Shown: positions 2,098-55,747 of the stretch, in pieces
How positions within the stretch are numbered: position 1 is the stretch's first letter
Layout of the letters: each line of letters begins with the position of its first letter
Assembly (NCBI RefSeq): GCF_032444005.1
Contig: NW_027193546.1
Location: 682,001 to 746,000 of the forward strand
Length of the DNA stretch: 64,000 nt
Direction of reading: 5' to 3'
Origin: Ranitomeya imitator
Taxonomy: Eukaryota
Position numbers and translations under genes: made by a program
Notes under the pieces: model-generated
Seen by the model: the letters and a program-made list of their open reading frames with translations, nothing else
What the model was told of the DNA's origin: nothing
The model's database searches: none

Positions 2098-2113
2098 GGC
2101 TCTTATAAGAGCC
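2073..2113 (-). terminator. H1 histone stem-loop (2098-2113) and U7-binding histone downstream element (2073-2081)
   Basis: Minus strand reads AAAGGCTCT-TATA-AGAGCC-ACCAC, then AGAGCTGTA 16 nt after the stem; the stem starts 28 nt after the H1 stop. Confidence 0.93.
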
Positions 2114-4367: not shown

Positions 4368-4369
4368 AG

Positions 4370-9712: not shown

Positions 9713-9728
9713 GGCTCTTAGAAGAGCC
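9713..9728 (-). terminator. H2A histone stem-loop
   Basis: Minus strand CCAAA GGCTCT TCTA AGAGCC ACCCA, with AAGAGCC 17 nt downstream. Confidence 0.95.
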
Positions 9729-13272: not shown

Positions 13273-14261
13273 TATTGCCCGAGAGCCGCCAGTCCTGACA
13301 CTAGATGAAGCGGGGGAGGAAAAGTGATAGAACAGAAGGACGATCAGTAACTGAGCAGGGATCCTGTGACGGCCGATAATGTAACTGCCTGACCTGTGAG
13401 ATCCTGACACCACAGGGTAATGTTCTAAGCAGGGACACTCCGCAATCTTCTACACATGATCCTACATTTCCCATCACAGACCTCCTGCCTGCAGCCGTAG
13501 GACTGATCTGTAATGGGGAGACATGGTGGGATCTGCTGGGAAGGGCAGAATTTGTCTTCCCTGAAATGTCTCTTGTAGGATATGTCCCTGACCAGTATAT
13601 CGTCTCCATAATACGGATTGTGACGGGAAAGGGACGATCTGATCGTCTCCAGGTCAGACACACGGGAACATCACAGCATGTGGAGAACACGAATCATTCT
13701 CTATATCCATGAGAGGAAACCGGAGCGGATACAGCGCCGCTAACCTGGAAATCTGCAGATTCCTGTGTGGGATGTAAGAGACCAATGATCGCTCAACACA
13801 AGCAGATTTCCCGATATCGGCCCTGGGACCAGGTGTTATATGAAGACAAAAGACGGAAAAAAGCGGGAACCGTAAACGTGTTACCATTGGAAACATTAGC
13901 TCCTCCCTCTGCTGATTGGCTGAACACAGGACGGTTGGGGGTTTGAATTTCCCGCCGCTTCTAAATGTAATGACGTCACTTACACTGTAAAAAGAATCCA
14001 GATTAGGCTCTAGATCAACTCCACCACAAATGGCTCCTGTTACCTGAGAAACGAGAGTAATGAACTAATAAACGAGACCCCAGAATGCCGAGATCTGTGC
14101 AGCAAGGAGTTAAATAAGAAGTCCCTGAATACACATCAACTCGCTGAGCAATGCCCAGATAATTCCTGAGATTTTCTCACCATCTCCCTCGTCACCAGGC
14201 GCAGAGCCCAGGGCGGAGCGAGCAGACACCTCGGGGAGACGGGAGAGGACACCGGAGCAGT

Positions 14262-14355
14262 GTGGGTGGCTCTTATAGTGAGGCTGTGGGTGGCTCTTAT
14301 AGTGAGGGTGTAGGTGGCTCTTATAGTGAGGGTGTGGGTGGCTCTTAGAAGAGCC
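14262..14355 (-). repeat. H2B stem-loop (14340-14355) followed by three extra tandem copies of a 24-bp 3'-processing segment
   Basis: Minus strand GGCTCT TCTA AGAGCC, then (ACCCACACCCTCACTATAAGAGCC)x3 with 1-2 substitutions. Confidence 0.92.
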
Positions 14356-14385
14356 TTTGGGGTGAGGAGCGGAGCACGGANNNNN

Positions 14386-14784
<399 letters not shown>

Positions 14785-20218: not shown

Positions 20219-20866
<648 letters not shown>

Positions 20867-21037: not shown

Positions 21038-24000
21038 GATCATACAGCTCTGCGGGGAGGAGGTGGTGGCACTGATGATACAGCTCTGCGGGGAGGAGGT
21101 GGTGGCACTGATCATACAGCTCTGCGGGGAGGAGGAGGTGGCACTGATCATACAGCTCTGCGGGGAGGAGGTGGTGGCACTGATCATACAGCTCTGCGGG
21201 GAGGAGGTGGTGGCACTGATCATACAGCTCTGCGGGGAGGAGGTGGTGGCACTGATCATACAGCTCTGCGGGGAGGAGGTGGTGGCACTGATCATACAGC
21301 TCTGCAGGGAGGAGGTGGTGGCACTGATCATACAGCTCTGCGGGGAGAAGGTGTTGGCACTGATCATACAGCTCTGCGGGGAGAAGGTGTTGGCACTGAT
21401 CATACAGCTCTCCGGGGAGGAGGTGATTTCTCTGATCATACAGCTCTGCAGGGAGGATGAGGTTATGGCTCTGATCATACAGGTCTGAGGGGAGTAGGTG
21501 GTGGCTCTGATCATACAGCTCTGCGGGGAGAGGGTGGTGGCACTGATCATACAGCTCTGCGGGGAGGAGGTGATGGCTCTGATCCTACAGCTCTGCGGGG
21601 AGAATGTGGTGGCTCTGATCATACAGCTCTGCGGGGAGAAGGTGGTGGCACTGATCATACGGCTCTCCGGGGAGGAGGTGATTTCTCTGATCATACAGCT
21701 CTGCAGGGAGGAGGTGGTGGCTCTGATCATACAGCTCTGCGGGGAGGAGGTGGTGGCTCTGATCATACAGCTCTGCGGGGAGGAGGTGGTGGTACTGATC
21801 ATACAGCTGTGCGGGGAGGAGGTGATTTCTCTGATCATACAGCTCTGCAGGGAGGAGGTGGTGGCACTGATCATACAGCTCTGCGGGGAGGAGGTGGTGG
21901 CACTGATCATACAGCTCTGCGGGGAGGAGGTGGTGGCACTGATCATACAGCTCTGCGGGGAGGAGGAGGTGGCTCTGATCATACAGCTCTGCGGGGAGGA
22001 GGAGGTGGCACTGATCATACAGCTCTGCGGGGAGGAGGTGGTGGCACTGATCATACAGCTCTGCGGGGAGGAGGTGGTGGCACTGATCATACAGCTCTGC
22101 GGGGAGGAGGTGGTGGCACTGATTATACAGCTCTGCGGGGAGAGGGTGGTGGCTCTGATCATACAGCTCTGCGGGGAGGAGGTGGTGGCTCTGATCATAC
22201 AGCTCTGCGGGGTGGAGGTGATTTCTCTGATCATACAGCTCTGCGGGGTGGAGGTGGTGGCACTGATTATACAGCTCTGCGGGGAGGAAGTGGTGGCTCT
22301 GATCATACAGCTCTGCGGGGGAGAAGGTGGTGGCACTGATCATACAGCTCTGCGGGGTGGAGGTGATTTCTCTGATCATACAGCTCTGCAGGGAGGAGTA
22401 GGTGGTGGCACTGATGATACAGCTCTGCGGGGAGGAGGTGGTGGCACTGATCATACAGCTCTGCGGGGTGGAGGTGATTTCTCTGATCATACAGCTCTGC
22501 GGGGAGGAGGAGATGGCACTGATCATACAGCTCTGCGGGGAGGAGGTGGTGGCACTGAACATACAGCTCTGCGGGGAGGAGGTGGTGGCTCTGATCATAC
22601 TGCTCTGCGGGGAGGAGGTGGTGGTACTGATCATACAGCTGTGCGGGGAGGAGGTGATTTCTCTGATCATACAGCTCTGCAGGGAGGAGGTGGTGGCTCT
22701 GATCATACAGCTCTGCGGGGAGGAGGTGGTGGCTCTGATCATACAGCTCTGCGGGGAGGAGGAGGTGGCACTGATCATACAGCTCTGCGGGGAGGAGGTG
22801 GTGGCACTGATCATACAGCTCTGCGGGGAGGAGGTGGTGGCACTGATCATACAGCTCTGCGGGGAGGAGGTGGTGGCACTGATCATACAGCTCTGCGGGG
22901 AGGAGGAGGTGGCTCTGATCATACAGCTCTGCGGGGAGGAGGAGGTGGCACTGATCATACAGCTCTGCGGGGAGGAGGTGGTGGCACTGATCATACAGCT
23001 CTGCGGGGGAGAAGGTGGTGGCACTGATCATACAGCTCTGCGGGGTGGAGGTGATTTCTCTGATCATACAGCTCTGCAGGGAGGAGTAGGTGGTGGCACT
23101 GATGATACAGCTCTGCGGGGAGGAGGTGGTGGCACTGATCATACAGCTCTGCGGGGTGGAGGTGATTTCTCTGATCATACAGCTCTGCGGGGAGAAGGAG
23201 GTGGCACTGATCATACAGCTCTGCGGGGAGGAGGTGGTGGCACTGATCATACAGCTCTGCGGGGAGGAGGAGGTGGCTCTGATCATACAGCTCTGCGGGG
23301 AGGAGGAGGTGGCACTGATCATACAGCTCTGCGGGGAGGAGGTGGTGGCACTGATCATACAGCTCTGCGGGGAGGAGGTGGTGGCACTGATCATACAGCT
23401 CTGCGGGGAGGAGGTGGTGGCACTGATTATACAGCTCTGCGGGGAGAGGGTGGTGGCTCTGATCATACAGCTCTGCGGGGAGGAGGTGGTGGCTCTGATC
23501 ATACAGCTCTGCGGGGTGGAGGTGATTTCTCTGATCATACAGCTCTGCGGGGTGGAGGTGGTGGCACTGATTATACAGCTCTGCGGGGAGGAAGTGGTGG
23601 CTCTGATCATACAGCTCTGCGGGGGAGAAGGTGGTGGCACTGATCATACAGCTCTGCGGGGTGGAGGTGATTTCTCTGATCATACAGCTCTGCAGGGAGG
23701 AGTAGGTGGTGGCACTGATGATACAGCTCTGCGGGGAGGAGGTGGTGGCACTGATCATACAGCTCTGCGGGGTGGAGGTGATTTCTCTGATCATACAGCT
23801 CTGCGGGGAGGAGGAGGTGGCACTGATCATACAGCTCTGCGGGGAGGAGGTGGTGGCACTGATCATACAGCTCTGCGGGGAGGAGGTGGTGGCTCTGATC
23901 ATACTGCTCTGCGGGGAGGAGGTGGTGGTACTGATCATACAGCTGTGCGGGGAGGAGGTGATTTCTCTGATCATACAGCTCTGCAGGGAGGAGGTGGTGG

Positions 24001-27000
24001 CTCTGATCATACAGCTCTGCGGGGAGGAGGTGGTGGCTCTGATCATACAGCTCTGCGGGGAGGAGGAGATGGCACTGATCATACAGCTCTGCGGGGAGGA
24101 GGTGGTGGCACTGAACATACAGCTCTGCGGGGAGGAGGTGGTGGCTCTGATCATACTGCTCTGCGGGGAGGAGGTGGTGGTACTGATCATACAGCTGTGC
24201 GGGGAGGAGGTGATTTCTCTGATCATACAGCTCTGCAGGGAGGAGGTGGTGGCTCTGATCATACAGCTCTGCGGGGAGGAGGTGGTGGCTCTGATCATAC
24301 AGCTCTGCGGGGAGGAGGAGGTGGCACTGATCATACAGCTCTGCGGGGAGGAGGTGGTGGCACTGATCATACAGCTCTGCGGGGAGGAGGTGGTGGCACT
24401 GATCATACAGCTCTGCGGGGAGGAGGTGGTGGCACTGATCATACAGCTCTGCGGGGAGGAGGAGGTGGCTCTGATCATACAGCTCTGCGGGGAGGAGGAG
24501 GTGGCACTGATCATACAGCTCTGCGGGGAGGAGGTGGTGGCACTGATCATACAGCTCTGCGGGGGAGAAGGTGGTGGCACTGATCATACAGCTCTGCGGG
24601 GTGGAGGTGATTTCTCTGATCATACAGCTCTGCAGGGAGGAGTAGGTGGTGGCACTGATGATACAGCTCTGCGGGGAGGAGGTGGTGGCACTGATCATAC
24701 AGCTCTGCGGGGTGGAGGTGATTTCTCTGATCATACAGCTCTGCGGGGAGAAGGAGGTGGCACTGATCATACAGCTCTGCGGGGAGGAGGTGGTGGCACT
24801 GATCATACAGCTCTGCGGGGAGGAGGAGGTGGCTCTGATCATACAGCTCTGCGGGGAGGAGGAGGTGGCACTGATCATACAGCTCTGCGGGGAGGAGGTG
24901 GTGGCACTGATCATACAGCTCTGCGGGGAGGAGGTGGTGGCACTGATCATACAGCTCTGCGGGGAGGAGGTGGTGGCACTGATTATACAGCTCTGCGGGG
25001 AGAGGGTGGTGGCTCTGATCATACAGCTCTGCGGGGAGGAGGTGGTGGCTCTGATCATACAGCTCTGCGGGGTGGAGGTGATTTCTCTGATCATACAGCT
25101 CTGCGGGGTGGAGGTGGTGGCACTGATTATACAGCTCTGCGGGGAGGAAGTGGTGGCTCTGATCATACAGCTCTGCGGGGGAGAAGGTGGTGGCACTGAT
25201 CATACAGCTCTGCGGGGTGGAGGTGATTTCTCTGATCATACAGCTCTGCAGGGAGGAGTAGGTGGTGGCACTGATGATACAGCTCTGCGGGGAGGAGGTG
25301 GTGGCACTGATCATACAGCTCTGCGGGGTGGAGGTGATTTCTCTGATCATACAGCTCTGCGGGGAGGAGGAGGTGGCACTGATCATACAGCTCTGCGGGG
25401 AGGAGGTGGTGGCACTGATCATACAGCTCTGCGGGGAGGAGGTGGTGGCTCTGATCATACTGCTCTGCGGGGAGGAGGTGGTGGTACTGATCATACAGCT
25501 GTGCGGGGAGGAGGTGATTTCTCTGATCATACAGCTCTGCAGGGAGGAGGTGGTGGCTCTGATCATACAGCTCTGCGGGGAGGAGGTGGTGGCTCTGATC
25601 ATACAGCTCTGCGGGGAGGAGGAGGTGGCACTGATCATACAGCTCTGCGGGGAGGAGGTGGTGGCACTGATCATACAGCTCTGCGGGGAGGAGGTGGTGG
25701 CACTGATCATACAGCTCTGCGGGGAGGAGGTGGTGGCACTGATCATACAGCTCTGCGGGGAGGAGGAGGTGGCTCTGATCATACAGCTCTGCGGGGAGGA
25801 GGAGGTGGCACTGATCATACAGCTCTGCGGGGAGGAGGTGGTGGCACTGATCATACAGCTCTGCGGGGGAGAAGGTGGTGGCACTGATCATACAGCTCTG
25901 CGGGGTGGAGGTGATTTCTCTGATCATACAGCTCTGCAGGGAGGAGTAGGTGGTGGCACTGATGATACAGCTCTGCGGGGAGGAGGTGGTGGCACTGATC
26001 ATACAGCTCTGCGGGTGGAGGTGATTTCTCTGATCATACAGCTCTGCGGGGAGAAGGAGGTGGCACTGATCATACAGCTCTGCGGGGAGGAGGTGGTGGC
26101 ACTGATCATACAGCTCTGCGGGGAGGAGGTGGTGGCACTGATCATACAGCTCTGCGGGGAGGAGGTGGTGGCACTGATTATACAGCTCTGCGGGGAGAGG
26201 GTGGTGGCTCTGATCATACAGCTCTGCGGGGAGGAGGTGGTGGCTCTGATCATACAGCTCTGCGGGGTGGAGGTGATTTCTCTGATCATACAGCTCTGCG
26301 GGGTGGAGGTGGTGGCACTGATTATACAGCTCTGCGGGGAGGAAGTGGTGGCTCTGATCATACAGCTCTGCGGGGGAGAAGGTGGTGGCACTGATCATAC
26401 AGCTCTGCGGGGTGGAGGTGATTTCTCTGATCATACAGCTCTGCAGTGAGGAGTAGGTGGTGGCACTGATGATACAGCTCTGCGGGGAGGAGGTGGTGGC
26501 ACTGATCATACAGCTCTGCGGGGTGGAGGTGATTTCTCTGATCATACAGCTCTGCAGGGAGGAGTAGGTGGTGGCACTGATGATACAGCTCTGCGGGGAG
26601 GAGGTGGTGGCACTGATCATACAGCTCTGCGGGGAGGAGGTGGTGGCTCTGATCATACAGCTCTGCGGGGAGGAGGTGGTGGCTCTGATCATGCAGCTCT
26701 GCGGGGAGGAGGTGGTGGCACTGATCATACAGCTGTGCGGGGAGGAGGTGGTGGCACTGATCATACAGCTCTGCGGGGAGGAGGTGGTGGCTCTGATCAT
26801 ACAGCTCTGCGGGGAGGAGGTGGTGGTACTGATCATACAGCTGTGCGGGGAGGAGGTGATTTCTCTGATCATACAGCTCTGCAGGGAGGAGGTGGTGGCT
26901 CTGATCATACAGCTCTGCGGGGAGGAGGAGGTGGCACTGATCATACAGCTCTGCGGGGAGGAGGTGGTGGCACTGATCATACAGCTCTGCGGGGAGGAGG

Positions 27001-30000
27001 TGGTGGCACTGATCATACAGCTCTGCGGGGAGGAGGTGGTGGCACTGATCATACAGCTCTGCGGGGAGGAGGAGGTGGCACTGATCATACAGCTCTGCGG
27101 GGAGGAGGTGGTGGCACTGATCATACAGCTCTGCGGGGAGGAGGTGGTGGCACTGATCATACAGCTCTGCGGGGAGGAGGTGGTGGCACTGATCGTACAG
27201 CTCTGCGGGGAGGAGGTGGTGGCACTGATCATACAGCTCTGCAGGGAGGAGGTGGTGGCACTGATCATACAGCTCTGCGGGGAGAAGGTGTTGGCACTGA
27301 TCATACAGCTCTCCGGGGAGGAGGTGATTTCTCTGATCATACAGCTCTGCAGGGAGGAGGAGGTTATGGCTCTGATCATACAGGTCTGAGGGGAGTAGGT
27401 GGTGGCTCTGATCATACAGCTCTGCGGGGAGAGGGTGGTGGCACTGATCATACAGCTCTGCGGGGAGGAGGTGATGGCTCTGATCCTACAGCTCTGCGGG
27501 GAGAATGTGGTGGTTCTGATCATACAGCTCTGCGGGGAGAAGGTGGTGGCACTGATCATACAGCTCTCCGGGGAGGAGGTGATTTCTCTGATCATACAGC
27601 TCTGCAGGGAGGAGGTGGTGGCTCTGATCATACAGCTCTGTGGGGAGGAGGTGGTGGCTCTGATCATGCAGCTCTGCGGGGAGGAGGTGGTGTCACTGAT
27701 CATACAGCTGTGCGGGGAGGAGGTGGTGGCACTGACCATACAGCTCTGCGGGGACGAGGTGGTGGCACTGATCATACAGCTGTGCGGGGAGGAGGTGATT
27801 TCTCTGATCATACAGCTCTGCAGGGAGGAGGTGGTGGCTCTGATCATACAGCTCTGCGGGGAGGAGGTGGTGGCACTGATCATACAGCTCTGCGGGGTGG
27901 AGGTGATTTCTCTGATCAGACAGCTCTGCAGGGAGGAGTAGGTGGTGGCACTGATGATACAGCTCTGCGGGGAGGAGGTGGTGGCACTGATCATACAGCT
28001 CTGCGGGGTGGAGGTGATTTCTCTGATCAGACAGCTCTGCAGGGAGGAGTAGGTGGTGGCACTGATGATACAGCTCTGCGGGGAGGAGGTGGTGGCACTG
28101 ATCATACAGCTCTGCGGGGAGGAGGAGGTGGCACTGATCATACAGCTCTGCGGGGAGGAGGTGGTGGCACTGATCATACAGCTCTGCGGGGAGGAGGTGG
28201 TGGCACTGATCATACAGCTCTGCGGGGAGGAAGTGGTGGCACTGATCATACAGCTCTGCGGGGAGGAGGTGGTGGCACTGATCGTACAGCTCTGCGTGGA
28301 GGAGGTGGTGGCACTGATCATACAACTCTGCAGGGAGGAGGTGATGGCACTGATCATACAGCTCTGCGGGGAGAAGGTGTTGGCACTGATCATACAGCTC
28401 TCCGGGGAGGAGGTGATTTCTCTGATCATACAGCTCTGCAGGGAGGAGGAGGTTATGGCTCTGATCATACAGGTCTGAGGGGAGTAGGTGGTGGCTCTGA
28501 TCATACAGCTCTGCGGGGAGAGGGTGGTGGCACTGATCATACAGCTCTGCGGGGAGGAGGTGATGGCTCTAATCCTACAGCTCTGCGAGGAGAATGTGGT
28601 GGCTCTGATCATACAGCTCTGCGGGGAGTAGGTGGTGGCACTGATCATACGGCTCTCCGGGGAGGAGGTGATTTCTCTGATCATACAGCTCTGCAGGGAG
28701 GAGGTGGTGGCTCTGATCATACAGCTCTGCGGAGAGGAGGTGGTGGCTCTGATCATGCAGCTCTGCGGGGAGGAGGTGGTGGCACTGATCATACAGCTGT
28801 GCGGGGAGGAGGTGGTGGCACTGATCATACAGCTCTGCGGGGAGGAGGTGGTGGTACTGATCATACAGCTGTGCGGGGAGGAGGTGATTTCTCTGATCAT
28901 ACAGCTCTGCAGGGAGGAGGTGGTGGCTCTGATCATACAGCTCTGCGGGGAGGTTGAGGTGGCACTGATCATACAGCTCTGCGGGGAGGAGGTGATGGCA
29001 CTGATCATACAGCTCTGCGGGGAGGAGGTGGTGGCACTGATCATACAGCTCTGCGGGGAGGAGGTGGTGGCACTGATCATGCAGCTCTGCGGGGAGGAGG
29101 AGGTGGCACTGATCATACAGCTCTGCGGGGAGGAGGTGGTGGCACTGATCATACAGCTCTGCGGGGAGGAGGTGGTGGCACTGATCATACAGCTCTGCGG
29201 GGAGGAGGTGGTGGCACTGATCATACAGCTCTGCGGGGAGGAGGTGGTGGCACTGATCATACAGCTCTGCGGGGAGGAGGTGATTTCTCTGATCATACAG
29301 CTCTGCAGGGAGGAGGTGGTGGCTCTGATCATACAGCTCTGCGGGGAGGAGGTGGTGGCTCTGATCATACAGCTCTGCGGGGAGGAGGTGGTGGTACTGA
29401 TCATACAGCTGTGCGGGGAGGAGGTGATTTCTCTGATCATACAGCTCTGCAGGGAGGAGGTGGTGGCTCTGATCATACAGCTCTGCGGGGAGGAGGTGGT
29501 GGCTCTGATCATACAGCTCTGCGGGGAGGAGGAGGTGGCACTGATCATACAGCTCTGCGGGGAGGAGGTGGTGGCACTGATCATACAGCTCTGCGGGGAG
29601 GAGGTGGTGGCACTGATCATACAGCTCTGCGGGGAGGAGGTGGTGGCACTGATCATACAGCTCTGCGGGGAGGAGGAGGTGGCTCTGATCATACAGCTCT
29701 GCGGGGAGGAGGTGGTGGCTCTGATCATACAGCTCTGCGGGGAGGAGGTGGTGGCTCTGATCATACAGCTCTGCGGGGAGGAGGTGGTGGTACTGATCAT
29801 ACAGCTGTGCGGGGAGGATGTGATTTCTCTGATCATACAGCTCTGCAGGGAGGAGGTGGTGGCTCTGATCATACAGCTCTGCGGGGAGGAGGAGGTGGCA
29901 CTGATCATACAGCTCTGCGGGGAGGAGGTGGTGGCACTGATCATACAGCTCTGCGGGGAGGAGGTGGTGGCACTGATCATACAGCTCTGCGGGGAGGAGG

Positions 30001-33000
30001 TGGTGGCACTGATCATACAGCTCTGCGGGGAGGAGGAGGTGGCACTGATCATACAGCTCTGCGGGGAGGAGGTGGTGGCACTGATCATACAGCTCTTCGG
30101 GGAGGAGGTGGTGGCACTGATCATACAGCTCTGCGGGGAGAAGGTGTTGGCACTGATCATACAGCTCTCCGGGGAGGAGGTGATTTCTCTGATCATACAG
30201 CTCTGCAGGGAGGAGGAGGTTATGGCTCTGATCATACAGGTCTGAGGGGAGTAGGTGGTGGCTCTGATCATACAGCTCTGCGGGGAGAGGGTGGTGGGAC
30301 TGATCATACAGCTCTGCGGGGAGGAGCTGATGGCTCTGATCCTACAGCTCTGCGGGGAGAATGTGGTGGCTCTGATCATACAGCTCTGCGGGGAGAAGGT
30401 GGTGGCACTGATCATACGGCTCTCCGGGGAGGAGGTGATTTCTCTGATCATACAGCTCTGCAGGGAGGAGGTGGTGGCTCTGATCATACAGCTCTGCGGG
30501 GAGGAGGTGGTGGCTCTGATCATGCAGCTCTGCGGGGAGGAGGTGGTGGCACTGATCATACAGCTGTGCGGGGAGGAGGTGGTGGCACTGATCATACAGC
30601 TCTGCGGGGAGGAGGTGGTGGTACTGATCATACAGCTGTGCGGGGAGGAGGTGATTTCTCTGATCATACAGCTCTGCAGGGAGGAGGTGGTGGCTCTGAT
30701 CATACAGCTCTGCGGGGAGGAGGAGGTGGCACTGATCATATAGCTCTGCGGGGAGGAGGTGGTGGCACTGATCATACAGCTCTGCGGGGGAGAAGGTGGT
30801 GGCACTGATCATACAGCTCTGCGGGGTGGAGGTGATTTCTCTGATCATACAGCTCTGCAGGGAGGAGTAGGTGGTGGCACTGATGATACAGCTCTGCGGG
30901 GAGGAGGTGGTGGCACTGATCATACAGCTCTGCGGGGAGGAGGTGGTGGCTCTGATCATACAGCTCTGCGGGGAGGAGGTGGTGGCTCTGATCATGCAGC
31001 TCTGCGGGGAGGAGGTGGTGGCACTGATCATACAGCTCTGCGGGGAGGAGGTGGTGGCTCTGATCATACAGCTCTGCGGGGAGGAGGTGGTGGTACTGAT
31101 CATACAGCTGTGCGGGGAGGAGGTGATTTCTCTGATCATACAGCTCTGCAGGGAGGAGGTGGTGGCTCTGATCATACAGCTCTGCAGGGAGGAGGAGGTG
31201 GCACTGATCATACAGCTCTGCGGGGAGGAGGTGGTGGCACTGATCATACAGCTCTGCGGGGAGGAGGTGGTGTCACTGATCATACAGCTCTGCGGGGAGG
31301 AGGTGGTGGCACTGATCATACAGCTCTGCGGGGAGGAGGAGGTGGCACTGATCATACAGCTCTGCGGGGAGGAGGTGGTGGCACTGATCATACAGCTCTG
31401 CGGGGAGGAGGTGGTGGCACTGACCATACAGCTCTGCGGGGAGGAGGTGGTGGCACTGATCATACAGCTCTGCGGGGAGGAGGTGGTGGCACTGATCATA
31501 CAGCTCTGCGGGGAGGAGGTGGTGGCACTGATCGTACAGCTCTGCGGGGAGGAGGTGGTGGCACTGATTCTACAGCTCTGCAGGGAGGAGGTGGTGGCAC
31601 TGATCCTACAGCTCTGCGGGGAGAATGTGGTGGCTCTGATCATACAGCTCTGCGGGGAGAAGGTGGTGGCACTGATCATACGGCTCTCCGGAGAGGAGGT
31701 GATTTCTCTGATCATACAGCTCTGCAGGGAGGAGGTGGTGGCTCTGATCATACAGCTCTGCGGGGAGGAGGTTGTGGCTCTGATCATGCAGCTCTGCGGG
31801 GAGGAGGTGGTGGCACTGATCATACAGCTGTGCGGGGAGGAGGTGGTGGCACTGATCATACAGCTGTGCGGGGAGGAGGTGGTGGCACTGATCATACAGC
31901 TGTGCGGGGAGGAGGTGGTGGCACTGATCATACAGCTCTGCGGGGAGGAGGTGGTGGTGCTGGTCATACAGCTGTGCGGGGAGGAGGTGATTTCTCTGAT
32001 CATACAGCTCTGCAGGGAGGAGGTGGTGGTACTTATCATACAGCTGTGCGGGGAGGAGGTGATTTCTCTGATCATACAGCTCTGCAGGGAGGAGGTGGTG
32101 GCACTGATCATACAGCTCTGCGGGGAGGAGATGGTGGCACTGATCATACAGCTCTGCGGGGAGGAGGTGGTGGCACTGATCATACAGCTCTGCGGGGAGG
32201 AGGTGGTGGCACTGATCATACAGCTCTGCGGGGAGGAGGTGATTTCTCTGATCATACAGCTCTGCAGGGAGGAGGTGGTGGCTCTGATCATACAGCTCTG
32301 CGGGGAGGAGGTGGTGGCTCTGATCATACAGCTCTGCGGGGAGGAGGTGGTGGTACTGATCATACAGCTGTGCGGGGAGGAGGTGATTTCTCTGATCATA
32401 CAGCTCTGCAGGGAGGAGGTGGTGGCTCTGATCATACAGCTCTGCGGGGAGGAGGTGGTGGCTCTGATCATACAGCTCTGCGGGGAGGAGGAGGTGGCAC
32501 TGATCATACAGCTCTGCGGGGAGGAGGTGGTGGCACTGATCATACAGCTCTGCGGGGAGGAGGTGGTGGCACTGATCATACAGCTCTGCGGGGAGGAGGT
32601 GGTGGCACTGATCATACAGCTCTGCGGGGAGGAGGAGGTGGCTCTGATCATACAGCTCTGCGGGGAGGAGGAGGTGGCACTGATCATACAGCTCTGCGGG
32701 GAGGAGGTGGTGGCACTGATCATACAGCTCTGCGGGGAGGAGGTGGTGGCACTGATCATACAGCTCTGCGTGGAGGAGGTGGTGGCACTGATTATACAGC
32801 TCTGCGGGGAGAGGGTGGTGGCTCTGATCATACAGCTCTGCGGGGAGGAGGTGGTGGCTCTGATCATACAGCTCTGCGGGGTGGAGGTGATTTCTCTGAT
32901 CATACAGCTCTGCGGGGTGGAGGTGGTGGCACTGAATATACAGCTCTGCGGGGAGGAAGTGGTGGCTCTGATCATACAGCTCTGCGGGGGAGAAGGTGGT

Positions 33001-33540
33001 GGCACTGATCATACAGCTCTGCGGGGTGGAGGTGATTTCTCTGATCATACAGCTCTGCAGGGAGGAGTAGGTGGTGGCACTGATGATACAGCTCTGCGGG
33101 GAGGAGGTGGTGGCACTGATCATACAGCTCTGCGGGGTGGAGGTGATTTCTCTGATCATACAGCTCTGCGGGGAGGAGGAGGTGGCACTGATCATACAGC
33201 TCTGCGGGGAGGAGGTGGTGGCACTGATCATACAGCTCTGCGGGGAGGAGGTGGTGGCTCTGATCATACAGCTCTGCGGGGAGGAGGTGGTGGTACTGAT
33301 CATACAGCTGTGCGGGGAGGAGGTGATTTCTCTGATCATACAGCTCTGCAGGGAGGAGGTGGTGGCTCTGATCATACAGCTCTGCGGGGAGGAGGTGGTG
33401 GCTCTGTTCATACAGCTCTGCGGGGAGGAGGAGGTGGCACTGATCATACAGCTCTGCGGGGAGGAGGTGGTGGCACTGATCATACAGCTCTGCGGGGAGG
33501 AGGTGGTGGCACTGATCATACAGCTCTGCGGGGAGGAGGT
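21038..33540. repeat. 36-bp satellite, block 2 (~12.5 kb, ~345 monomers)
   Basis: Same monomer with ordered variants; starts ~400 bp upstream of the H3 ATG. Confidence 0.98.
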
Positions 33541-36500
33541 AACATAGTAACATAGTAACATAGTTAGTAAGGCCAAAAAAAGACATTTGTCCATCCAGTT
33601 CAGCCTATATTCCATCATAATAAATACCCAGATCTACGTCCTTCTACAGAACCTAATAATTGTATGATACAATATTGTTCTGCTCCAGGAAGACATCCAG
33701 GCCTCTCTTGAACCCCTCGACTGTGTTCGCCATCACCACCTCCTCAGGCAAGCAATTCCAGATTCTCACTGCCCTAACAGTAAAGAATCCTCTTCTATGT
33801 TGGTGGAAAAACCTTCTCTCCTCCAGACGCAAATAATGCCCCCTTGTGCCCCTCACCTTCCTTGGTATAAACAGATCCTCAGCGAGATATTTGTATTGTC
33901 CCCTTATATACTTATACATGGTTATTAGATCACCCCTCAGTCGTCTTTTTTCTAGACTAAATAATCCTAATTTCGCTAATCTATCTGGGTATTGTAGTTC
34001 TCCCATCCCCTTTATTAATTTTGTTGCCCTCCTTTGTACTCTCTCTAGTTCCATTATATCCTTCCTGAGCACCGGTGCCCAAAACTGGACACAGTACTCC
34101 ATGTGCGGTCTAACTAGGGATTTGTACAGAGGCAGTATAATGCTCTCATCATGTGTATCCAGACCTCTTTTAATGCACCCCATGATCCTGTTTGCCTTGG
34201 CAGCTGCTGCCTGGCACTGGCTGCTCCAGGTAAGTTTATCATTAACTAGGATCCCCAAGTCCTTCTCCCTGTCAGATTTACCCAGTGATTTCCCGTTCAG
34301 TGTGTAATGGTGATATTGATTCCCTCTTCCCATGTGTATAACCTTACATTTATCATTGTTAAACCTCATCTGCCACCTTTCAGCCCAAGTTTCCAACTTA
34401 TCCAGATCCATCTGTAGCAGAATACTATCTTCTCTTGTATTAACTGCTTTACATAGTTTTGTATCATCTGCAAATATCGATATTTTACTGTGTAAACCTT
34501 CTACCAGATCATTAATGAATATGTTGAAGAGAACAGGTCCCAATACTGACCCCTGCGGTACCCCACTGGTCACAGCGACCCAGTTAGAGACTATACCATT
34601 TATAACCACCCTCTGCTTTCTATCACTAAGCCAGTTACTAACCCATTTACACACATTTTCCCCCAGACCAAGCATTCTCATTTTGTGTACCAACCTCTTG
34701 TGCGGCACGGTATCAAACGCTTTGGAAAAATCGAGATATACCACGTCCAATGACTCACCGTGGTCCAGTCTATAGCTTACCTCTTCATAAAAACTGATTA
34801 GATTGGTTTGACAGGAGCGAGTTCTCATAAACCCATGCTGATATGGAGTTAAACAGTTATTCTCATTGAGATAATCCAGAATAACATCCCTCAGAAACCC
34901 TTCAAATATTTTACCAACAATAGAGGTTAGACTTACTGGCCTATAATTTCCAGGTTCACTTTTAGAGCCCTTTTTGAATATTGGCACCACATTTGCTATG
35001 CGCCAGTCCTGCGGAACAGACCCTGTCGCTATAGAGTCACTAAAAATAAGAAATAATGGTTTATCTATTACATTACTTAGTTCTCTTAGTACTCGTGGGT
35101 GTATGCCATCCGGACCTGGAGATTTATCTATTTTAATCTTATTTAGCCGGTTTCGCACCTCTTCTTGGGTTAGATTGGTGACTCTTAATATAGGGTTTTC
35201 ATTGTTTCTTGGGATTTCACCTAGCATTTCATTTTCCACCGTGAATACCGTGGAGAAGAAGGTGTTTAATATGTTAGCTTTTTCCTCGTCATCTACAACC
35301 ATTCTTTCCTCACTATTTTTTAAGGGGCCTACATTTTCAGTTTTTATTCTTTTACTATTGATATAGTTGAAGAACAGTTTGGGATTAGTTTTACTCTCCT
35401 TAGCAATGTGCTTCTCTGTTTCCTTTTTGGCAGCTTTAATTAGTTTTTTAGATAAAGTATTTTTCTCCCTATAGTTTTGTAGAGCTTCAATGGTGCCATC
35501 CTGCTTTAGTAGTGCAAATGCTTTCTTTTTACTGTTAATTGCCTGTCTTACTTCTTTGTTTAGCCACATTGGGTTTTTCCTATTTCTAGTCCTTTTATTC
35601 CCACAAGGTATAAACCGCTTACACTGCCTATTTAATGTGTTCTTAAACATTTCCCATTTATTATCTGTATTCTCATTTCTGAGGATATTGTCCCAGTCTA
35701 CCAGATTAAGGGCATCTCTAAGCTGTTCAAACTTTGCCTTCCTAAAGTTCAGTGTTTTTGTGACTCCCTGACAAGTCCCCCTAGTGAAAGACAGGTGAAA
35801 CTGCACAATATTGTGGTCGCTATTTCCTAAATGCCCAACCACCTGCAGATTTGTTATTCTGTCAGGTCTATTAGATAGTATTAGGTCTAAAAGTGCTGCT
35901 CCTCTGGTTGGATTCTGCACCAATTGTGAAAGATAATTTTTCTTGGTTATTAGCAGAAACCTGTTGCCTTTATGGGTTTCACAGGTTTCTGTTTCCCAGT
36001 TAATATCCGGGTAGTTAAAGTCCCCCATAACCAGGACCTCATTATGGGTTGCAGCTTCATCTATTTGCTTTAGAAGTAGACTTTCCATGGTTTCTGTTAT
36101 ATTTGGGGGTTTGTAACAGACCCCAATGAGAATTTTGTTACCATTTTTCCCTCCATGAATTTCGACCCATATGGACTCCACATCCTCATTCCCTTCGCTA
36201 ATATCCTCCCTTAAAGTGGACTTTAGACAAGACTTTACATAGAGACAAACCCCTCCTCCTCTCCGATTTTTACGATCCTTTCTAAACAGACTGTAACCCT
36301 GTAAGTTAACTGCCCAGTCATAGCTTTCATCTAACCATGTCTCGGTTATTCCCACTATGTCAAAGTTACCTGTAGATATTTCTGCTTCTAGTTCTTCCAT
36401 CTTGTTTGTCAGGCTTCTGGCGTTTGCGAGCATGCAGTTTAGAGGATTTTGTTTTGTTCAAATCTCCTCACTGTGGATTGTTTTAGAAATGTTCTTACCT

Positions 36501-36569
36501 CCCTTCTGAGTATGTTTTCCTGGGTCGTCTTTGTTCGAGTCTAATGTTTTTCTTCCCGTCCCCTCTTCT
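33541..36569 (-). mobile_element. CR1-clade LINE, 5'-truncated (no ORF1), inserted in the satellite
   Basis: 3' (TATGTTAC)n tail at ~33541-33563; EN and RT domains; flanked by satellite on both sides with a 0-3 bp duplication. Confidence 0.95.
33653..36433 (-). CDS. CR1 ORF2: apurinic-like endonuclease plus reverse transcriptase, uninterrupted 926 aa
   Basis: NARSL, GITETW, MGDFN, SDHN (EN); KSPGPDG, YRPVSLTS, QHGF, YLDFSKAFD, GVPQGSVLGP, FADD (RT). Confidence 0.95.
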   Translation of the reverse strand: MLANARSLTNKMEELEAEISTGNFDIVGITETWLDESYDWAVNLQGYSLFRKDRKNRRGGGVCLYVKSCLKSTLREDISEGNEDVESIWVEIHGGKNGNKILIGVCYKPPNITETMESLLLKQIDEAATHNEVLVMGDFNYPDINWETETCETHKGNRFLLITKKNYLSQLVQNPTRGAALLDLILSNRPDRITNLQVVGHLGNSDHNIVQFHLSFTRGTCQGVTKTLNFRKAKFEQLRDALNLVDWDNILRNENTDNKWEMFKNTLNRQCKRFIPCGNKRTRNRKNPMWLNKEVRQAINSKKKAFALLKQDGTIEALQNYREKNTLSKKLIKAAKKETEKHIAKESKTNPKLFFNYINSKRIKTENVGPLKNSEERMVVDDEEKANILNTFFSTVFTVENEMLGEIPRNNENPILRVTNLTQEEVRNRLNKIKIDKSPGPDGIHPRVLRELSNVIDKPLFLIFSDSIATGSVPQDWRIANVVPIFKKGSKSEPGNYRPVSLTSIVGKIFEGFLRDVILDYLNENNCLTPYQHGFMRTRSCQTNLISFYEEVSYRLDHGESLDVVYLDFSKAFDTVPHKRLVHKMRMLGLGENVCKWVSNWLSDRKQRVVINGIVSNWVAVTSGVPQGSVLGPVLFNIFINDLVEGLHSKISIFADDTKLCKAVNTREDSILLQMDLDKLETWAERWQMRFNNDKCKVIHMGRGNQYHHYTLNGKSLGKSDREKDLGILVNDKLTWSSQCQAAAAKANRIMGCIKRGLDTHDESIILPLYKSLVRPHMEYCVQFWAPVLRKDIMELERVQRRATKLIKGMGELQYPDRLAKLGLFSLEKRRLRGDLITMYKYIRGQYKYLAEDLFIPRKVRGTRGHYLRLEERRFFHQHRRGFFTVRAVRIWNCLPEEVVMANTVEGFKRGLDVFLEQNNIVSYNY

Positions 36570-39500
36570 GGTGGTGGCACTGATCATACAGCTCTGCGGG
36601 GAGGAGGAGGTGGCTCTGATCATACAGCTCTGCGGGGAGGAGGAGGTGGCACTGATCATACAGCTCTGCGGGGAGGAGGTGGTGGCACTGATCATACAGC
36701 TCTGCGGGGAGGAGGTGGTGGCACTGATCATACAGCTCTGCGGGGAGGAGGTGGTGGCACTGATTATACAGCTCTGCGGGGAGAGGGTGGTGGCTCTGAT
36801 CATACAGCTCTGCGGGGAGGAGGTGGTGGCTCTGATCATACAGCTCTGCGGGGTGGAGGTGGTGGCACTGATTATACAGCTCTGCGGGGAGGAAGTGGTG
36901 GCTCTGATCATACAGCTCTGCGGGGGAGAAGGTGGTGGCACTGATCATACAGCTCTGCGGGGTGGAGGTGATTTCTCTGATCATACAGCTCTGCAGGGAG
37001 GAGTAGGTGGTGGCACTGATGATACAGCTCTGCGGGGAGGAGGTGGTGGCACTGATCATACAGCTCTGCGGGGTGGAGGTGATTTCTCTGATCATACAAC
37101 TCTGCGGGGAGGAGGAGGTGGCACTGATCATACAGCTCTGCGGGGAGGAGGTGTTGGCACTGATCATACAGCTCTGCGGGGAGGAGGTGGTGGCACTGTT
37201 CATACAGCTCTGCGGGGAGGAGGTGGTGGCACTGATTATACAGCTCTGCGGGGAGAGGGTGGTGGCTCTGATCATACAGCTCTGCGGGGAGGAGGTGGTG
37301 GCTCTGATCATACAGCTCTGCGGGGTGGAGGTGATTTCTCTGATCATACAGCTCTGCGGGGTGGAGGTGGTGGCACTGATTATACAGCTCTGCGGGGAGG
37401 AAGTGGTGGCTCTGATCATACAGCTCTGCGGGGGAGAAGGTGGTGGCACTGATCATACAGCTCTGCGGGGTGGAGGTGATTTCTCTGATCATACAGCTCT
37501 GCAGGGAGGAGTAGGTGGTGGCACTGATGATACAGCTCTGCGGGGAGGAGGTGGTGGCACTGATCATACAGCTCTGCGGGGAGGAGGTGGTGGCTCTGAT
37601 CATACAGCTCTGCGGGGAGGAGGTGGTGGCTCTGATCATGCAGCTCTGCGGGGAGGAGGTGGTGGCACTGATCATACAGCTGTGCGGGGAGGAGGTGGTG
37701 GCACTGATCATACAGCTCTGCGGGGAGGAGGTGGTGGCTCTGATCATACAGCTCTGCGGAGAGGAGGTGGTGGTACTGATCATACAGCTGTGCGGGGAGG
37801 ATGTGATTTCTCTGATCATACAGCTCTGCAGGGAGGAGGTGGTGGCTCTGATCATACAGCTCTGCGGGGAGGAGGAGGTGGCACTGATCATACAGCTCTG
37901 CGGGGAGGAGGTGGTGGCACTGATCATACAGCTCTGCGGGGAGGAGGTGGTGGCACTGATCATACAGCTCTGCGGGGAGGAGGTGGTGGCACTGATCATA
38001 CAGCTCTGCGGGGAGGAGGAGGTGGCACTGATCATACAGCTCTGCGGGGAGGAGGTGGTGGCACTGATCATACAGCTCTGCGGGGAGGAGGTGGTGGCAC
38101 TGATCATACAGCTCTGCGGGGAGGAGGAGGTGGCACTGATCATACAGCTCTGCGGGGAGGAAGTGGTGGCACTGATCATACAGCTCTGCGGGGAGGAGGT
38201 GGTGGCACTGATCATACAGCTCTGCGGGGAGAAGGTGTTGGCACTGATCATACAGCTCTCCGGGGAGGAGGTGATTTCTCTGATCATACAGCTCTGCAGG
38301 GAGGAGGAGGTTATGGCTCTGATCATACAGGTCTGAGGGGAGTCGGTGGTGGCTCTGATCATACAGCTCTGCGGGGAGGAGGTGGTGGCTCTGATCATAC
38401 AGCTCTGCGGGGAGGAGGTGGTGGTACCGATCATACAGCTGTGCGGGGAGGAGGTGATTTCTCTGATCATACAGCTCTGCAGGGAGGAGGTGGTGTCTCT
38501 GATCATACAGCTCTGCGGGGAGGAGGTGGTGGCTCTGATCATACAGCTCTGCGGGGAGGAGGAGGTGGCACTGATCATACAGCTCTGCGGGGAGGAGGTG
38601 GTGGCACTGATCATACAGCTCTGCGGGGAGGAGGTGGTGGCACTGATCATACAGCTCTGCGGGGAGGAGGTGGTGGCACTGATCATACAGCTCTGCGGGG
38701 AGGAGGAGGTGGCTCTGATCATACAGCTCTGCGGGGAGGAGGAGGTGGCACTGATCATACAGCTCTGCGGGGAGGAGGTGGTGGCACTGATCATACAGCT
38801 CTGCGGGGAGGAGGTGGTGGCACTGATCATACAGCTCTGCGGGGAGGAGGTGGTGGCACTGATTATACAGCTCTGCGGGGAGAGGGTGGTGGCTCTGATC
38901 ATACAGCTCTGCGGGGAGGAGGTGGTGGCTCTGATCATACAGCTCTGCGGGGTGGAGTTGATTTCTCTGATCATACAGCTCTGCGGGGTGGAGGTGGTGG
39001 CACTGATTATACAGCTCTGCGGGGAGGAAGTGGTGGCTCTGATCATACAGCTCTGCGGGGGAGAAGGTGGTGGCACTGATCATACAGCTCTGCGGGGTGG
39101 AGGTGATTTCTCTGATCATACAGCTCTGCAGGGAGGAGAAGGTGGTGGCACTGATGATACAGCTCTGCGGGGAGGAGGTGGTGGCACTGATCATACAGCT
39201 CTGCGGGGTGGAGGTGATTTCTCTGATCATACAGCTCTGCAGGGAGGAGTAGGTGGTGGCACTGATGATACAGCTCTGCGGGGAGGAGGTGGTGGCACTG
39301 ATCATACAGCTCTGCGGGGAGGAGGTGGTGGCTCTGATCATACAGCTCTGCGGGGAGGAGGTGGTGGCTCTGATCATGCAGCTCTGCGGGGAGGAGTTGG
39401 TGGCACTGATCATACAGCTGTGCGGGGAGGAGGTGGTGGCACTGATCATACAGCTCTGCGGGGAGGAGGTGGTGGCTCTGATCATACAGCTCTGCGGGGA

Positions 39501-41856
39501 GGAGGTGGTGGTACTGATCATACAGCTGTGCGGGGAGGAGGTGATTTCTCTGATCATACAGCTCTGCAGGGAAGAGGTGGTGGCTCTGATCATACAGCTC
39601 TGCGGGGAGGAGGAGGTGGCATTGATCATACAGCTCTGCGGGGAGGAGGTGGTGGCACTGATCATACAGCTCTGCGGGGAGGAGGTGGTGGCACTGATCA
39701 TACAGCTCTGCGTGGAGGAGGTGGTGGCACTGATCATACAGCTCTGCGGGGAGGAGGTGGTGGCACTGATCATACAGCTCTGCGGGGAGGAGGTGATTTC
39801 TCTGATCATACAGCTCTGCAGGGAGGAGGTGGTGGTACTGATCATACAGCTCTGCGGGGAGGAGGTGGTGGCACTGATCATACAGCTCTGCGGGGAGGAG
39901 GTGGTGGCACTGATCATACAGCTCTGCGGGGAGGAGGAGGTGGCTCTGATCATACAGCTCTGCGGGGAGGAGGAGGTGGCACTGATCATACAGCTCTGCG
40001 GGGAGGAGGTGGTGGCACTGATCATACAGCTCTGCGGGGAGGAGGTGGTGGCACTGATCATACAGCTCTGCGGGGAGGAGGTGGTGGCACTGATTATACA
40101 GCTCTGCGGGGAGAGGGTGGTGGCTCTGATCATACAGCTCTGCGGGGAGGAGGTGGTGGCTCTGATCATACAGCTCTGCGGGGTGGAGGTGATTTCTCTG
40201 ATCATACAGCTCTGCGGGGTGGAGGTGGTGGCACTGATTATACAGCTCTGCGGGGAGGAAGTGGTGGCTCTGATCATACAGCTCTGCGGGGGAGAAGGTG
40301 GTGGCACTGATCATACAGCTCTGCGGGGTGGAGGTGATTTCTCTGATCATACAGCTCTGCAGGGAGGAGAAGGTGGTGGCACTGATCATACAGCTCTGCG
40401 GGGAGGAGGTGGTGGCACTGATCATACAGCTCTGCGGGGTGGAGGTGATTTCTCTGATCATACAGCTCTGCAGGGAGGAGTAGGTGGTGGCACTGATGAT
40501 ACAGCTCTGCGGGGAGGAGGTGGTGGCACTGATCATACAGCTCTGCGGGGAGGAGGTGGTGGCTCTGATCATACAGCTCTGCGGGGAGGAGGTGGTGGCT
40601 CTGATCATGCAGCTCTGCGGGGAGGAGTTGGTGGCACTGATCATACAGCTGTGCGGGGAGGAGGTGGTGGCACTGATCATACAGCTCTGCGGGGAGGAGG
40701 TGGTGGCTCTGATCATACAGCTCTGCGGGGAGGAGGTGGTGGTACTGATCATACAGCTGTGCGGGGAGGAGGTGATTTCTCTGATCATACAGCTCTGCAG
40801 GGAAGAGGTGGTGGCTCTGATCATACAGCTCTGCGGGGAGGAGGAGGTGGCACTGATCATACAGCTCTGCGGGGAGGAGGTGGTGGCACTGATCATACAG
40901 CTCTGCGGGGAGGAGGTGGTGGCACTGATCATACAGCTCTGCGGGGAGGAGGTGGTGGCACTGATCATACAGCTCTGCGGGGAGGAGGAGGTGGCACTGA
41001 TCATACAGCTCTGCGGGGAGGAGGTGGTGGCACTGATCATACAGCTCTGCGGGGAGGAGGTGGTGGCACTGATCATACAGCTCTGCGGGGAGGAGGTGGT
41101 GGCACTGATCATACAGCTCTGCGGGGAGGAGGTGGTGGCACTGATCATACAGCTCTGCGGGGAGGAGGTGATTTCTCTGATCATACAGCTCTGCAGGGAG
41201 GAGGTGGTGGTACTGATCATACAGCTGTGCGGGGAGGAGGTGATTTCTCTGATCATACAGCTCTGCAGGGAGGAGGTGGTGGCACTGATCATACAGCTCT
41301 GCGGGGAGGAGGTGGTGGCACTGATCATACAGCTCTGCGGGGAGGAGGTGGTGGCACTGATCATACAGCTCTGCGGGGAGGAGGTGGTGGCACTGATCAT
41401 ACAGCTCTGCGGGGAGGAGGTGATTTCTCTGATCATACAGCTCTGCAGGGAGGAGGTGGTGGCTCTGATCATACATCTCTGCGGGGAGGAGGTGGTGGCT
41501 CTGATCATACAGCTCTGCGGGGAGGAGGAGGTGGCACTGATCATACAGCTCTGCGGGGAGGAGATGGTGGCTCTGATCATACAGCTCTGCGGGGAGGAGG
41601 TGGTGGCTCTGATCATACAGCTCTGCGGGGAGGAGGAGGTGGCACTGATCATACAGCTCTGCGGGAAGGAGGTGGTGGCACTGATGATACAGCTCTGCGG
41701 GGAGGAAGTGGTGGCACTGATCATACAGCTCTGCGGGGAGGAGGTGGTGGCACTGATCATACAGCTCTGCGGGGAGGAGGTGGTGGCACTGATCATACAG
41801 CTCTGCGGTGAGGAGGTGGTGGCACTGATCATACAGCTCTGCGGGGAGGAGGTGGT
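36570..41856. repeat. 36-bp satellite, block 3 (~147 monomers)
   Basis: Same monomer; ends at the H1 stem-loop 41857-41872. Confidence 0.98.
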
Positions 41857-41872
41857 GGCTCTTATAAGAGCC
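41857..41872 (-). terminator. H1 copy 2 stem-loop
   Basis: GGCTCTTATAAGAGCC, identical to copy 1. Confidence 0.93.
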
Positions 41873-41900
41873 TTTGTGGTAACAGAACAGGGGCTGCAGC

Positions 41901-42539
41901 TTATTTCTTAGCCGCGGGCTTCTTGGCTTTCGCAGCCTTCTTAGCCGGACTCTTGGCGGGTTTGGCCGCCTTCTTAGCCGGACTCTTCGTCACCTTCTTG
42001 GGCTTGGGAGCGGCTTTCGGCTTCTTGGGGCTCTTGGCCGCTTTCTTGGCCGCTGCGGGCTTCTTGGCCGTTTTCGGGCTCTTCTTGGCCGCAGTCGGAG
42101 CCTTCTTGGGCTTCTTCGGAGATTTGGCGGCTTTCTTGGCAGCAGCGGGTTTCTTAGGTTTGGCCGCAGCTGCTGGCTTCGTCTTGGCCACTTTGTCCTT
42201 CGTCTCCTGCTTCTTGTTCAGCTTGAAGGACCCGGAGGCGCCGCTGCCTTTCACCTGGAGGAGGGCGCCCTTGGTGACCAGAGCCTTGACGGCCAGCTTC
42301 AGGCGGCTGTTGTTCTTCTCTACATCGTATCCTCCAGCAGACAGAGCCTTCTTCAGGGCGGCCAGAGACACCCCGCTGCGCTCCTTGGAGGCGGACACGG
42401 CTTTCACGATCAGCTCGGAGACGCTGGGGCCGGAGGGTTTATTGCTCTTCTTGGCAGCAGATTTCTTCGGCTGCTTCTTGGATTTGGCGGCCGGTTCTGC
42501 GGGAGGGGGAGCGGCGGCTGGCGCGGTCTCTGCCATCAT
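41901..42539 (-). CDS. H1: Histone H1, copy 2
   Basis: Protein identical to copy 1; offset 39759 bp. Confidence 0.98.
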
Positions 42540-47454: not shown

Positions 47455-47775
<321 letters not shown>

Positions 47776-47805
47776 TTGTGTTCTCTTCTGTCCTCACAAC
47801 CCAAA

Positions 47806-47821
47806 GGCTCTTTTCAGAGCC
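47806..47821 (+). terminator. H4 copy 3 stem-loop
   Basis: GGCTCT TTTC AGAGCC. Confidence 0.97.
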
Positions 47822-55731: not shown

Positions 55732-55747
55732 GGCTCTTATAAGAGCC
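55732..55747 (-). terminator. H1 copy 3 stem-loop
   Basis: GGCTCTTATAAGAGCC. Confidence 0.93.

Follow-up and report, generated by a model that had tools for sequence, protein, structure and literature searches.

Why is a histone H1 gene of a frog followed by many kilobases of one short repeat, and does this repeat do anything for the gene? The question was raised by a stretch of 64,000 nucleotides from Ranitomeya imitator (NCBI RefSeq assembly GCF_032444005.1, contig NW_027193546.1, positions 682,001 to 746,000 of the forward strand), which is called the window below and is numbered from its first letter. A sequence-only reading of positions 21038 to 41872 had described the repeat as a satellite made of H1 3′ processing signals, with hundreds of tandem binding sites for the U7 small nuclear RNA. 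The histone 3′ signal is a 16-nt stem-loop with ACCCA-like flanks, located directly 3′ of a replication-type histone open reading frame (ORF). The histone downstream element (HDE) is purine-rich, lies about 10-17 nt past the cleavage site, and is complementary to the 5′ end of U7. We found that the array is a satellite which arose from the H1 3′ processing segment and has never left its parent gene. As to its role, we lean towards a mostly neutral, gene-derived satellite, whose transcripts, if any, would present weak U7 sites many times over; in this interpretation, any back-up termination before the neighbouring H3 gene would be a by-product.

Tandem Repeats Finder, run on the 64-kb window, placed repeats with a period of 36 bp at 1-2100 (58 copies), 21038-41859 (576 copies), and 50951-55734 (132 copies). 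When aligned to their consensus with wrap-around, the repeats fell into four blocks of head-to-tail monomers (about 59, 347, 148, and 134; 688 monomers and 24.7 kb in all), with arrays many kilobases long. The array stretches are set apart in the window by a constant GC content of 0.59 and a GC skew of +0.36. These totals agree with the ~24.7 kb and ~680 monomers of the sequence-only reading. However, the block 21038-41872 is not continuous, because a retrotransposon at 33539-36569 splits it. The monomer consensus on the minus strand is AGTGCCACCACCTCCTCCCCGCAGAGCTGTATGATC, and its parts are, in order, the 3′ arm of the stem, ACCAC, a C-rich spacer, the core AGAGCTGTA, and TGATC.

The origin of this monomer can be read from the two ends of the array. 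The H1 stem-loops were found exactly at the junctions 2098, 41857, and 55732 that had been named from the sequence, with the array directly adjoining. Each of the three H1 genes (211 amino acids each, with the Pfam Linker_histone domain) terminates in GGCTCTTATAAGAGCC, and the stem-loop runs without a gap into ACCACCTCCTCCCCGC-AGAGCTGTA-TGATC-AGTGCC.... The first 6 nt of the first monomer, AGAGCC, are the 3′ arm of the H1 stem, and later monomers begin with AGTGCC (383 copies), AGAGCC (162), or AGAGAA (97). At the distal end, position 21038, the array stops on a complete monomer (...TGATC) and is followed by the unique sequence GGTTTTCC. An array that is in phase with a working part of the gene at one end and is made up of complete units is what in-place amplification of a 36-bp piece of the H1 flank predicts, and it is unlike what the capture of a foreign satellite predicts. 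The claim that the monomer is the post-hairpin processing segment of H1 was thus borne out by both ends of the array, the 3′ arm of the H1 stem on one side and a complete monomer on the other.

With respect to the mechanism, one 36-bp piece of the H1 3′ flank, from the 3′ arm of the stem-loop through 5 nt past AGAGCTGTA, was duplicated in place. Slippage and unequal exchange then multiplied this unit, which travels with the tandem histone repeat unit. The ancestral single-copy flank would have read ...AGAGCC-ACCACC...AGAGCTGTATGATC-GGTTTTCC. In-place duplication, amplification, and transport with the histone unit are all recorded in the present arrays. In addition, H2B carries a small expansion of its own (Table 1), in which the repeat unit of 24 bp is AAGAGCC-ACCCACACCCTCACTAT with an ACCCAC... 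spacer, present in 3.7 copies. The H2B and H1 arrays together indicate that histone 3′ ends can seed tandem arrays.

The array is a real satellite that turns over quickly. The monomer variants recur as ordered strings, and identity rises to peaks between monomers 34-36 units apart, the mark of a higher-order repeat; such repeats, and turnover by unequal exchange, are features of satellites. Furthermore, the 131 paired monomers of blocks B2 and C differ at 0.32% of bases (15 base changes), and the two blocks are separated by 8 monomer-level insertion or deletion events spanning 20 monomers. Thus, the monomer copy number shifts about as readily as single bases. The histone units at 2100-8658, 41859-48418, and 55734-59348 correspond to each other with 99.76-99.83% identity. 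Meanwhile, the 5′ part of a long interspersed element (LINE), together with the proximal array (34035-41859), was duplicated at 48416-55734 with 99.7% identity. This retrotransposon, at 33539-36569, cleanly splits one monomer and has an 8-bp repeat at its 3′ tail.

These structures also bear on whether the assembler could have enlarged the array or made it up. Assembly of long satellites is difficult, and a run of 285 N (14381-14665, inside the H2B gene) lies nearby. However, the junction and satellite words are present in DNA and RNA runs of independent origin, filed under several organism labels, the variants of the monomer follow an order and are not random, a LINE is inserted in the array, and two colinear copies (B2 and C) exist. 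An assembly artefact is therefore hardly credible.

Does the core still match U7? Human and mouse U7 begin with (C/A)AGUGUUACAGCUCUUUUAG, which contains UACAGCUCU (PMC7026596), and the earlier statement that the core is complementary to vertebrate U7 was right in this respect. All pairing values were computed with human/mouse U7, which may differ from that of the frog. The monomer core forms 9 contiguous bp with the U7 5′ end (-14.0 kcal/mol), which is the strongest predicted duplex among the histone elements of the window (H2B -13.6, H4 -13.2, H2A -11.8, and H3 -6.6 kcal/mol), and only 0.55% of shuffled monomers matched the pairing of the real one; the repetition in the array already excludes chance. 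Thus, the duplex-energy check proposed with the sequence-only reading came out positive with the mammalian sequence; no U7 gene was found in the 64-kb window. Of 684 monomers, 603 (88%) have a perfect core AGAGCTGTA and 79 have one mismatch in it, in line with the earlier remark that some variants disrupt it; one natural variant changes AGAGC to ACAGC.

The H1 gene itself has the expected arrangement, with a purine-rich element after the cleavage site that is U7-complementary as judged against mammalian U7. At H1, the core follows the stem after 16 nt, and at H2A and H2B, AAGAGCC does so after 17 nt, as had been stated (16-17 nt). At H2A, for example, AAGAGCC recurs 17 nt 3′ of the stem of the stem-loop at 9713-9728. 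In addition, H4 carries AGGGCTGCA at the position equivalent to the H1 core, which fits a U7 containing CAGCUCU. In a published survey, the UCUUU box is the sole part of U7 called universal (PMC5054213). Our interpretation presupposes a U7 5′ end that would be complementary to AGAGCUGUA. Folding predictions indicated that minus-strand array RNA is less structured than shuffles (z = +2.65), with a mean unpaired probability of 0.31 in the core vs 0.59 in the rest; they leave accessibility undecided, because the cores can pair with each other. Judged by its sequence, each copy could still bind the U7 small nuclear ribonucleoprotein (snRNP).

Binding and cleavage are different matters. A histone stem-loop after a replication-type histone ORF is present only at the first array copy. 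The H1 stem-loop scored 29.9 bits (E = 7.6e-7) against Rfam Histone3, just below the gathering score of 34 bits because its loop is UAUA. Monomers 2 to n have no hairpin and keep the 3′ arm alone. According to PMC7026596, substrates without SLBP or a hairpin are processed only with a strong U7 duplex, for example 15 bp, and a hairpin-less substrate of ordinary complementarity was not cut by endogenous U7. Thus, a hairpin-less monomer with 9 bp is likely to be a weak cleavage site that may still bind U7, and the idea of a cleavage ladder put forward in the sequence-only reading is weakened by these published data.

Is RNA made from the array at all? Four RNA-library runs were mapped across the H1/array region, and the resulting contigs are unstranded. 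Contigs in two of the four runs bridge the H1 processing site and extend 33 and 72 nt past the cleavage. Contig X11 (41819-42023) has zero mismatches, and contig X25 (41785-42028) has nine differences and derives from another H1 copy. That copy (record 11), an expressed one from elsewhere in the genome, has the canonical UUUC loop, unlike the non-canonical UAUA loop in the H1 genes of the window; it shows four changes in the 16-nt spacer and an unchanged core AGAGCTGTA, and it enters the satellite. Coverage stopped at the H1 5′ end in all four runs, with zero depth over the promoter (42590-42700). The junction words equal the promoter in genomic copy number, so the bridging contigs are better explained by RNA than by carry-over of DNA. 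These data, in contigs reaching at most two monomers, support probable read-through past the first element, and to this extent they agree with the H1 read-through RNA of the sequence-only reading.

The H3 gene and its promoter lie on the H1 strand just past the array, so that H1 read-through would run into H3, the first gene on its way. In the neutral reading, RNA polymerase II that escapes the first, hairpin-assisted site would produce nascent RNA with repeated hairpin-less, individually weak U7 sites. Such sites may bind U7 snRNP and may occasionally support back-up cleavage and termination before the H3 promoter. The poly(A) signals AATAAA and ATTAAA are absent from both strands of the 24.7 kb of array, which would also be part of this picture; the termination effect would be a by-product and not the reason for the array.

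On the other hand, the monomers might have been selected as a fail-safe terminator, in which U7-dependent cleavage sites would stop H1 read-through, polyadenylated H1 mRNA, and interference with the H3 promoter. Several observations agree with this: ACCAC is intact in 70% of monomers and lies as far from the core as in the native signal, no 9-mer of the monomer varies less than the core, the arrays have no poly(A) signals, H3 is just downstream on the same strand, and RNA-library contigs pass the first site. However, cleavage without hairpin or SLBP needs ~15 bp (PMC7026596) and 9 bp are available here, the array length changes quickly, and the statistics for selection are weak. We therefore regard a selected terminator as unlikely, and the comparison with related frogs also speaks against it.

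The nearest named proteins to the H1 of the window are from Ranitomeya imitator (99% identity), R. variabilis (95-98%), and Phyllobates terribilis (91%), and an identical protein is recorded in assembly GCA_032444005.1 alone; by these matches, the DNA is from a dendrobatid poison frog, probably Ranitomeya. We measured the H1-H3 gaps of relatives from annotated gene layouts. H1 is followed by H3 on the same strand with a gap of 1042 bp in Phyllobates and of 883 and 1389 bp in R. variabilis, and the gap here is 20.8 kb. Thus, the gene order is conserved and the 20.8-kb array is a local expansion. At the orthologous H1 loci to which the sequence-only reading had pointed, the H1-H3 order was kept; the array size was not, with gaps of only ~1 kb in both R. 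variabilis and Phyllobates. The layouts show, as far as annotated gaps can indicate it, that the array size is not conserved between species, and the relatives manage with ~1-kb gaps. Under the neutral reading, nothing would constrain the array length, which could range from tens to hundreds of copies.

The same gaps bear on a role of the DNA apart from U7. The array might separate H1 from H3 as a spacer or a boundary, or the polymerase might be slowed by its G-rich template strand (GGGGAGGAGGTGGTGG per monomer). The strong, constant GC skew of the arrays and their position between two same-strand genes are compatible with such a role. However, the H1/H3 pair works with a spacer of ~1 kb in the relatives, and we consider a role of this kind very improbable.

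Two further possibilities concern the RNA. First, read-through H1 transcripts with tens to hundreds of U7 sites might act as architectural RNA, concentrating or tethering U7 snRNP and aiding the histone locus body. In its more specific form, H1 read-through RNA in oocytes or rapidly dividing embryonic cells would be a locus-bound scaffold that nucleates or anchors this body, the sphere. The spheres of amphibian oocytes hold U7 snRNP and sit at histone loci (PMC12046345), the U7 complementarity of the array is multivalent, and satellite-only contigs reached depths of 11-42, at least as high as the 5-14 on H1 in the same two RNA-library runs. However, animals without such arrays, including frogs, form these bodies, the array size differs widely between loci and species, and the satellite depth may reflect carry-over of genomic DNA. 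We therefore give little credence to an architectural RNA in general, and as little to the oocyte and embryonic scaffold in particular. If true, the scaffold would offer an RNA-based explanation for U7-holding bodies sitting on amphibian histone loci. Second, satellite RNA with many U7-complementary sites per transcript might be a sponge that diverts U7 snRNP from histone pre-mRNAs and lowers histone output. However, over-expressed human long intergenic non-coding RNAs (lincRNAs) with several HDE-like motifs left the U7 level and histone processing unchanged (PMC11417402). In addition, the downstream cleavage product is normally degraded, which frees U7 (PMC7026596). A sponge is thus extremely doubtful.

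Some observations weigh against a mostly neutral satellite with weak U7 sites and should be noted together. The AGAGCTGTA window was the least variable of the 36 circular 9-nt windows by three measures, and distinct variants numbered 11 of 27 possible in the core vs 54 of 81 elsewhere (Fisher p = 0.023). The low variability hints at constraint, which would favour an adaptive reading. In addition, hairpin-free cleavage is documented only for duplexes much stronger than 9 bp (PMC7026596), and the U7 pairing was computed with mammalian U7. Furthermore, the contigs carry no strand, and, given the abundance of the satellite, small amounts of genomic DNA could account for the satellite-only contigs.

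Meanwhile, the core-variability effect shrank to a slight trend when positions were grouped by base. The raw signal is confounded because the rest of the monomer is C-rich and the C positions carry most variants, and the monomers are not independent samples because variants spread by block amplification. Selection on the core is therefore not demonstrable from these statistics, which are suggestive in raw form but not robust after grouping by base. The per-position comparison suggested earlier thus returned the core as the least variable 9-mer, a distinction that faded with grouping, and the concession of the sequence-only reading that selection is not shown holds for this weak and composition-confounded test. 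The U7-complementary core would have been kept mainly because the monomers are young, homogenised copies of a working signal. Neutral slippage, which the sequence-only reading had mentioned as a caveat, remains the leading explanation of the array.

How does the array compare with known systems? In the newt Notophthalmus viridescens, histone clusters reportedly lie in satellite 1 and form giant read-through units at the sphere loci of lampbrush chromosomes (work of Stephenson, Diaz, and Gall, 1981-87). The two amphibians are alike in that histone clusters lie tens of kilobases apart with a satellite 3′ of histone genes, and in the newt, transcription that overruns the 3′ end of a histone gene is said to enter the satellite, at a locus bearing a U7-holding body. 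However, the newt unit is ~220 bp and is not known as a derivative of a processing signal, whereas the 36-bp unit here is the H1 cleavage site plus the U7-pairing element. Furthermore, read-through is reportedly long in the newt, and the contigs here extend only 33-72 nt. The PcP190 satellite of hyloid frogs is said to derive from 5S ribosomal DNA. It is similar in that part of a multicopy gene gave rise, by amplification, to a satellite with higher-order structure, but its source is the body of a gene of RNA polymerase III, and here it is a 3′ processing signal of RNA polymerase II that is still on its parent gene.

The spheres of amphibians are histone locus bodies and contain U7 snRNP (PMC12046345). 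In human, HDE-like motifs in LTR12/HERV1 elements and lincRNAs are bound by U7 snRNA (Plewka et al. 2024, PMC11417402). These are likewise repeated, non-histone elements; a transcript often has several of them, and U7 base-pairs with them through its complementary 5′ end. However, they are dispersed long terminal repeats with a 15-nt motif that is absent from histone genes, and they act in transcriptional repression through NF-Y; the frog array is a 9-nt native H1 element, tandem and attached to the gene. In addition, the UACUAAC repeats of Gomafu, HSATIII, and PNCTR (cited in PMC7151628) are architectural or decoy RNAs in which short binding motifs stand in tandem. The likeness is that a single transcript carries many copies of the short motif of one RNA-processing factor. 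The difference is that binding and nuclear bodies were demonstrated there, whereas for the frog array, both are inferred from sequence. In our literature search, no paper was found with the monomer sequence or an HDE-derived satellite.

The locus is thus a clean, datable case of a satellite born from a functional RNA-processing signal and still joined to its parent gene. It is also a natural experiment on U7 biology, with hundreds of native hairpin-less HDE copies and array lengths that vary between loci and species. If the array RNA binds U7 snRNP, this would bear on tethering of the histone locus body and on containment of read-through in tandem histone clusters. If it does not, the array would be a caution against reading function into motif-rich satellites. 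The coordinates of the features are given in Table 1.

Table 1. Histone genes, 3′ processing elements, satellite arrays, and retrotransposon copies in the window.
Feature	Positions	Strand	Remarks
Array A	1..2103	minus	~59 monomers 3′ of H1 copy 1; truncated by window start
H1 stem-loop copy 1	2098..2113	minus	3′ arm AGAGCC = first 6 nt of first monomer
H1 coding sequence copy 1	2142..2777	minus	unit 99.76% identical to copy 2
H2B small expansion	14260..14347	minus	24 bp x 3.7 of post-hairpin segment, independent of H1 event
Histone H3 gene	20219..20629	minus, same strand as H1	~400 bp past distal array end
Array B1	21038..33538	minus	~347 monomers, distal portion, ends in register
Non-LTR (CR1-like) retrotransposon	33539..36569	minus, H1 orientation	3 kb, intact 926-amino-acid endonuclease + reverse transcriptase ORF
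Array B2	36570..41861	minus	~148 monomers, adjoins H1
First AGAGCTGTA, native H1 HDE	41832..41840	minus	16 nt after stem
H1 stem-loop copy 2	41857..41872	minus	loop UAUA; Rfam Histone3 29.9 bits
H1 coding sequence copy 2	41901..42536	minus	211 amino acids, Pfam Linker_histone
Retrotransposon 5′ part, second copy	48416..50950	minus	99.7% identical, ORF broken, duplicated together with array
Array C	50951..55736	minus	~134 monomers; colinear with B2 except for 8 monomer-level indel events
H1 stem-loop copy 3	55732..55747	minus	GGCTCTTATAAGAGCC
H1 coding sequence copy 3	55776..56411	minus	211 amino acids, Pfam Linker_histone

The monomer has no stop codon in any frame, and ORFs of up to 1880 amino acids cross the arrays on both strands. 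These ORFs are long because the length of the stop-free monomer, 36, is divisible by 3; with all six frames open, the array easily misleads gene predictors. The H1 models of R. variabilis are oddly long or contain an 'intron' (240 amino acids over 13.6 kb), for which array ORFs may be the explanation. In the second retrotransposon copy (48416-50950), the ORF is split at 49608/49609. Fragments of the 3′ part of the array-borne retrotransposon were found at 8837-9323 and 18075-18591, and the rearrangement between histone units 2 and 3 joins at the edge of the homology to such a 3′ fragment.

Two candidates for further copies of the signal were rejected. The single TACAGCTCT found at 8240 and at 48000 matches by chance and has no relation to the monomer. 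In addition, an exact-pattern scan of metagenome contigs gave two matches, which were chance matches inside unrelated, apparently protein-coding sequence.

A good histone stem-loop with an AAGAGCC element but without a histone ORF upstream is located at 15577-15592 on the minus strand. The sequence upstream of it (15783-16229) is 88.6% identical to the upstream region of H2A (10486-10907). To judge from this similarity, the orphan stem-loop may belong to an 'empty' histone-like transcription unit or a pseudogene.

Every histone unit contains a 1.5-kb tandem duplication with 92% identity (4088-5542 and 5550-7035), in which an ORF of 105 amino acids (4680-4997 and 6180-6497) has no Pfam match. 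Upstream of every H1 gene, a long CT-rich microsatellite comes after a 21/42-bp tandem repeat, AGAGTGTACAGTATATACAGC (3777-3989, 43536-43748, and 57411-57623). At the edge of the histone cluster (61751-62644), the sequence is AT-rich (GC ~0.30) and contains a 359-bp repeat in 2.5 copies (97% matches) with nested 97-bp and 25-bp repeats.

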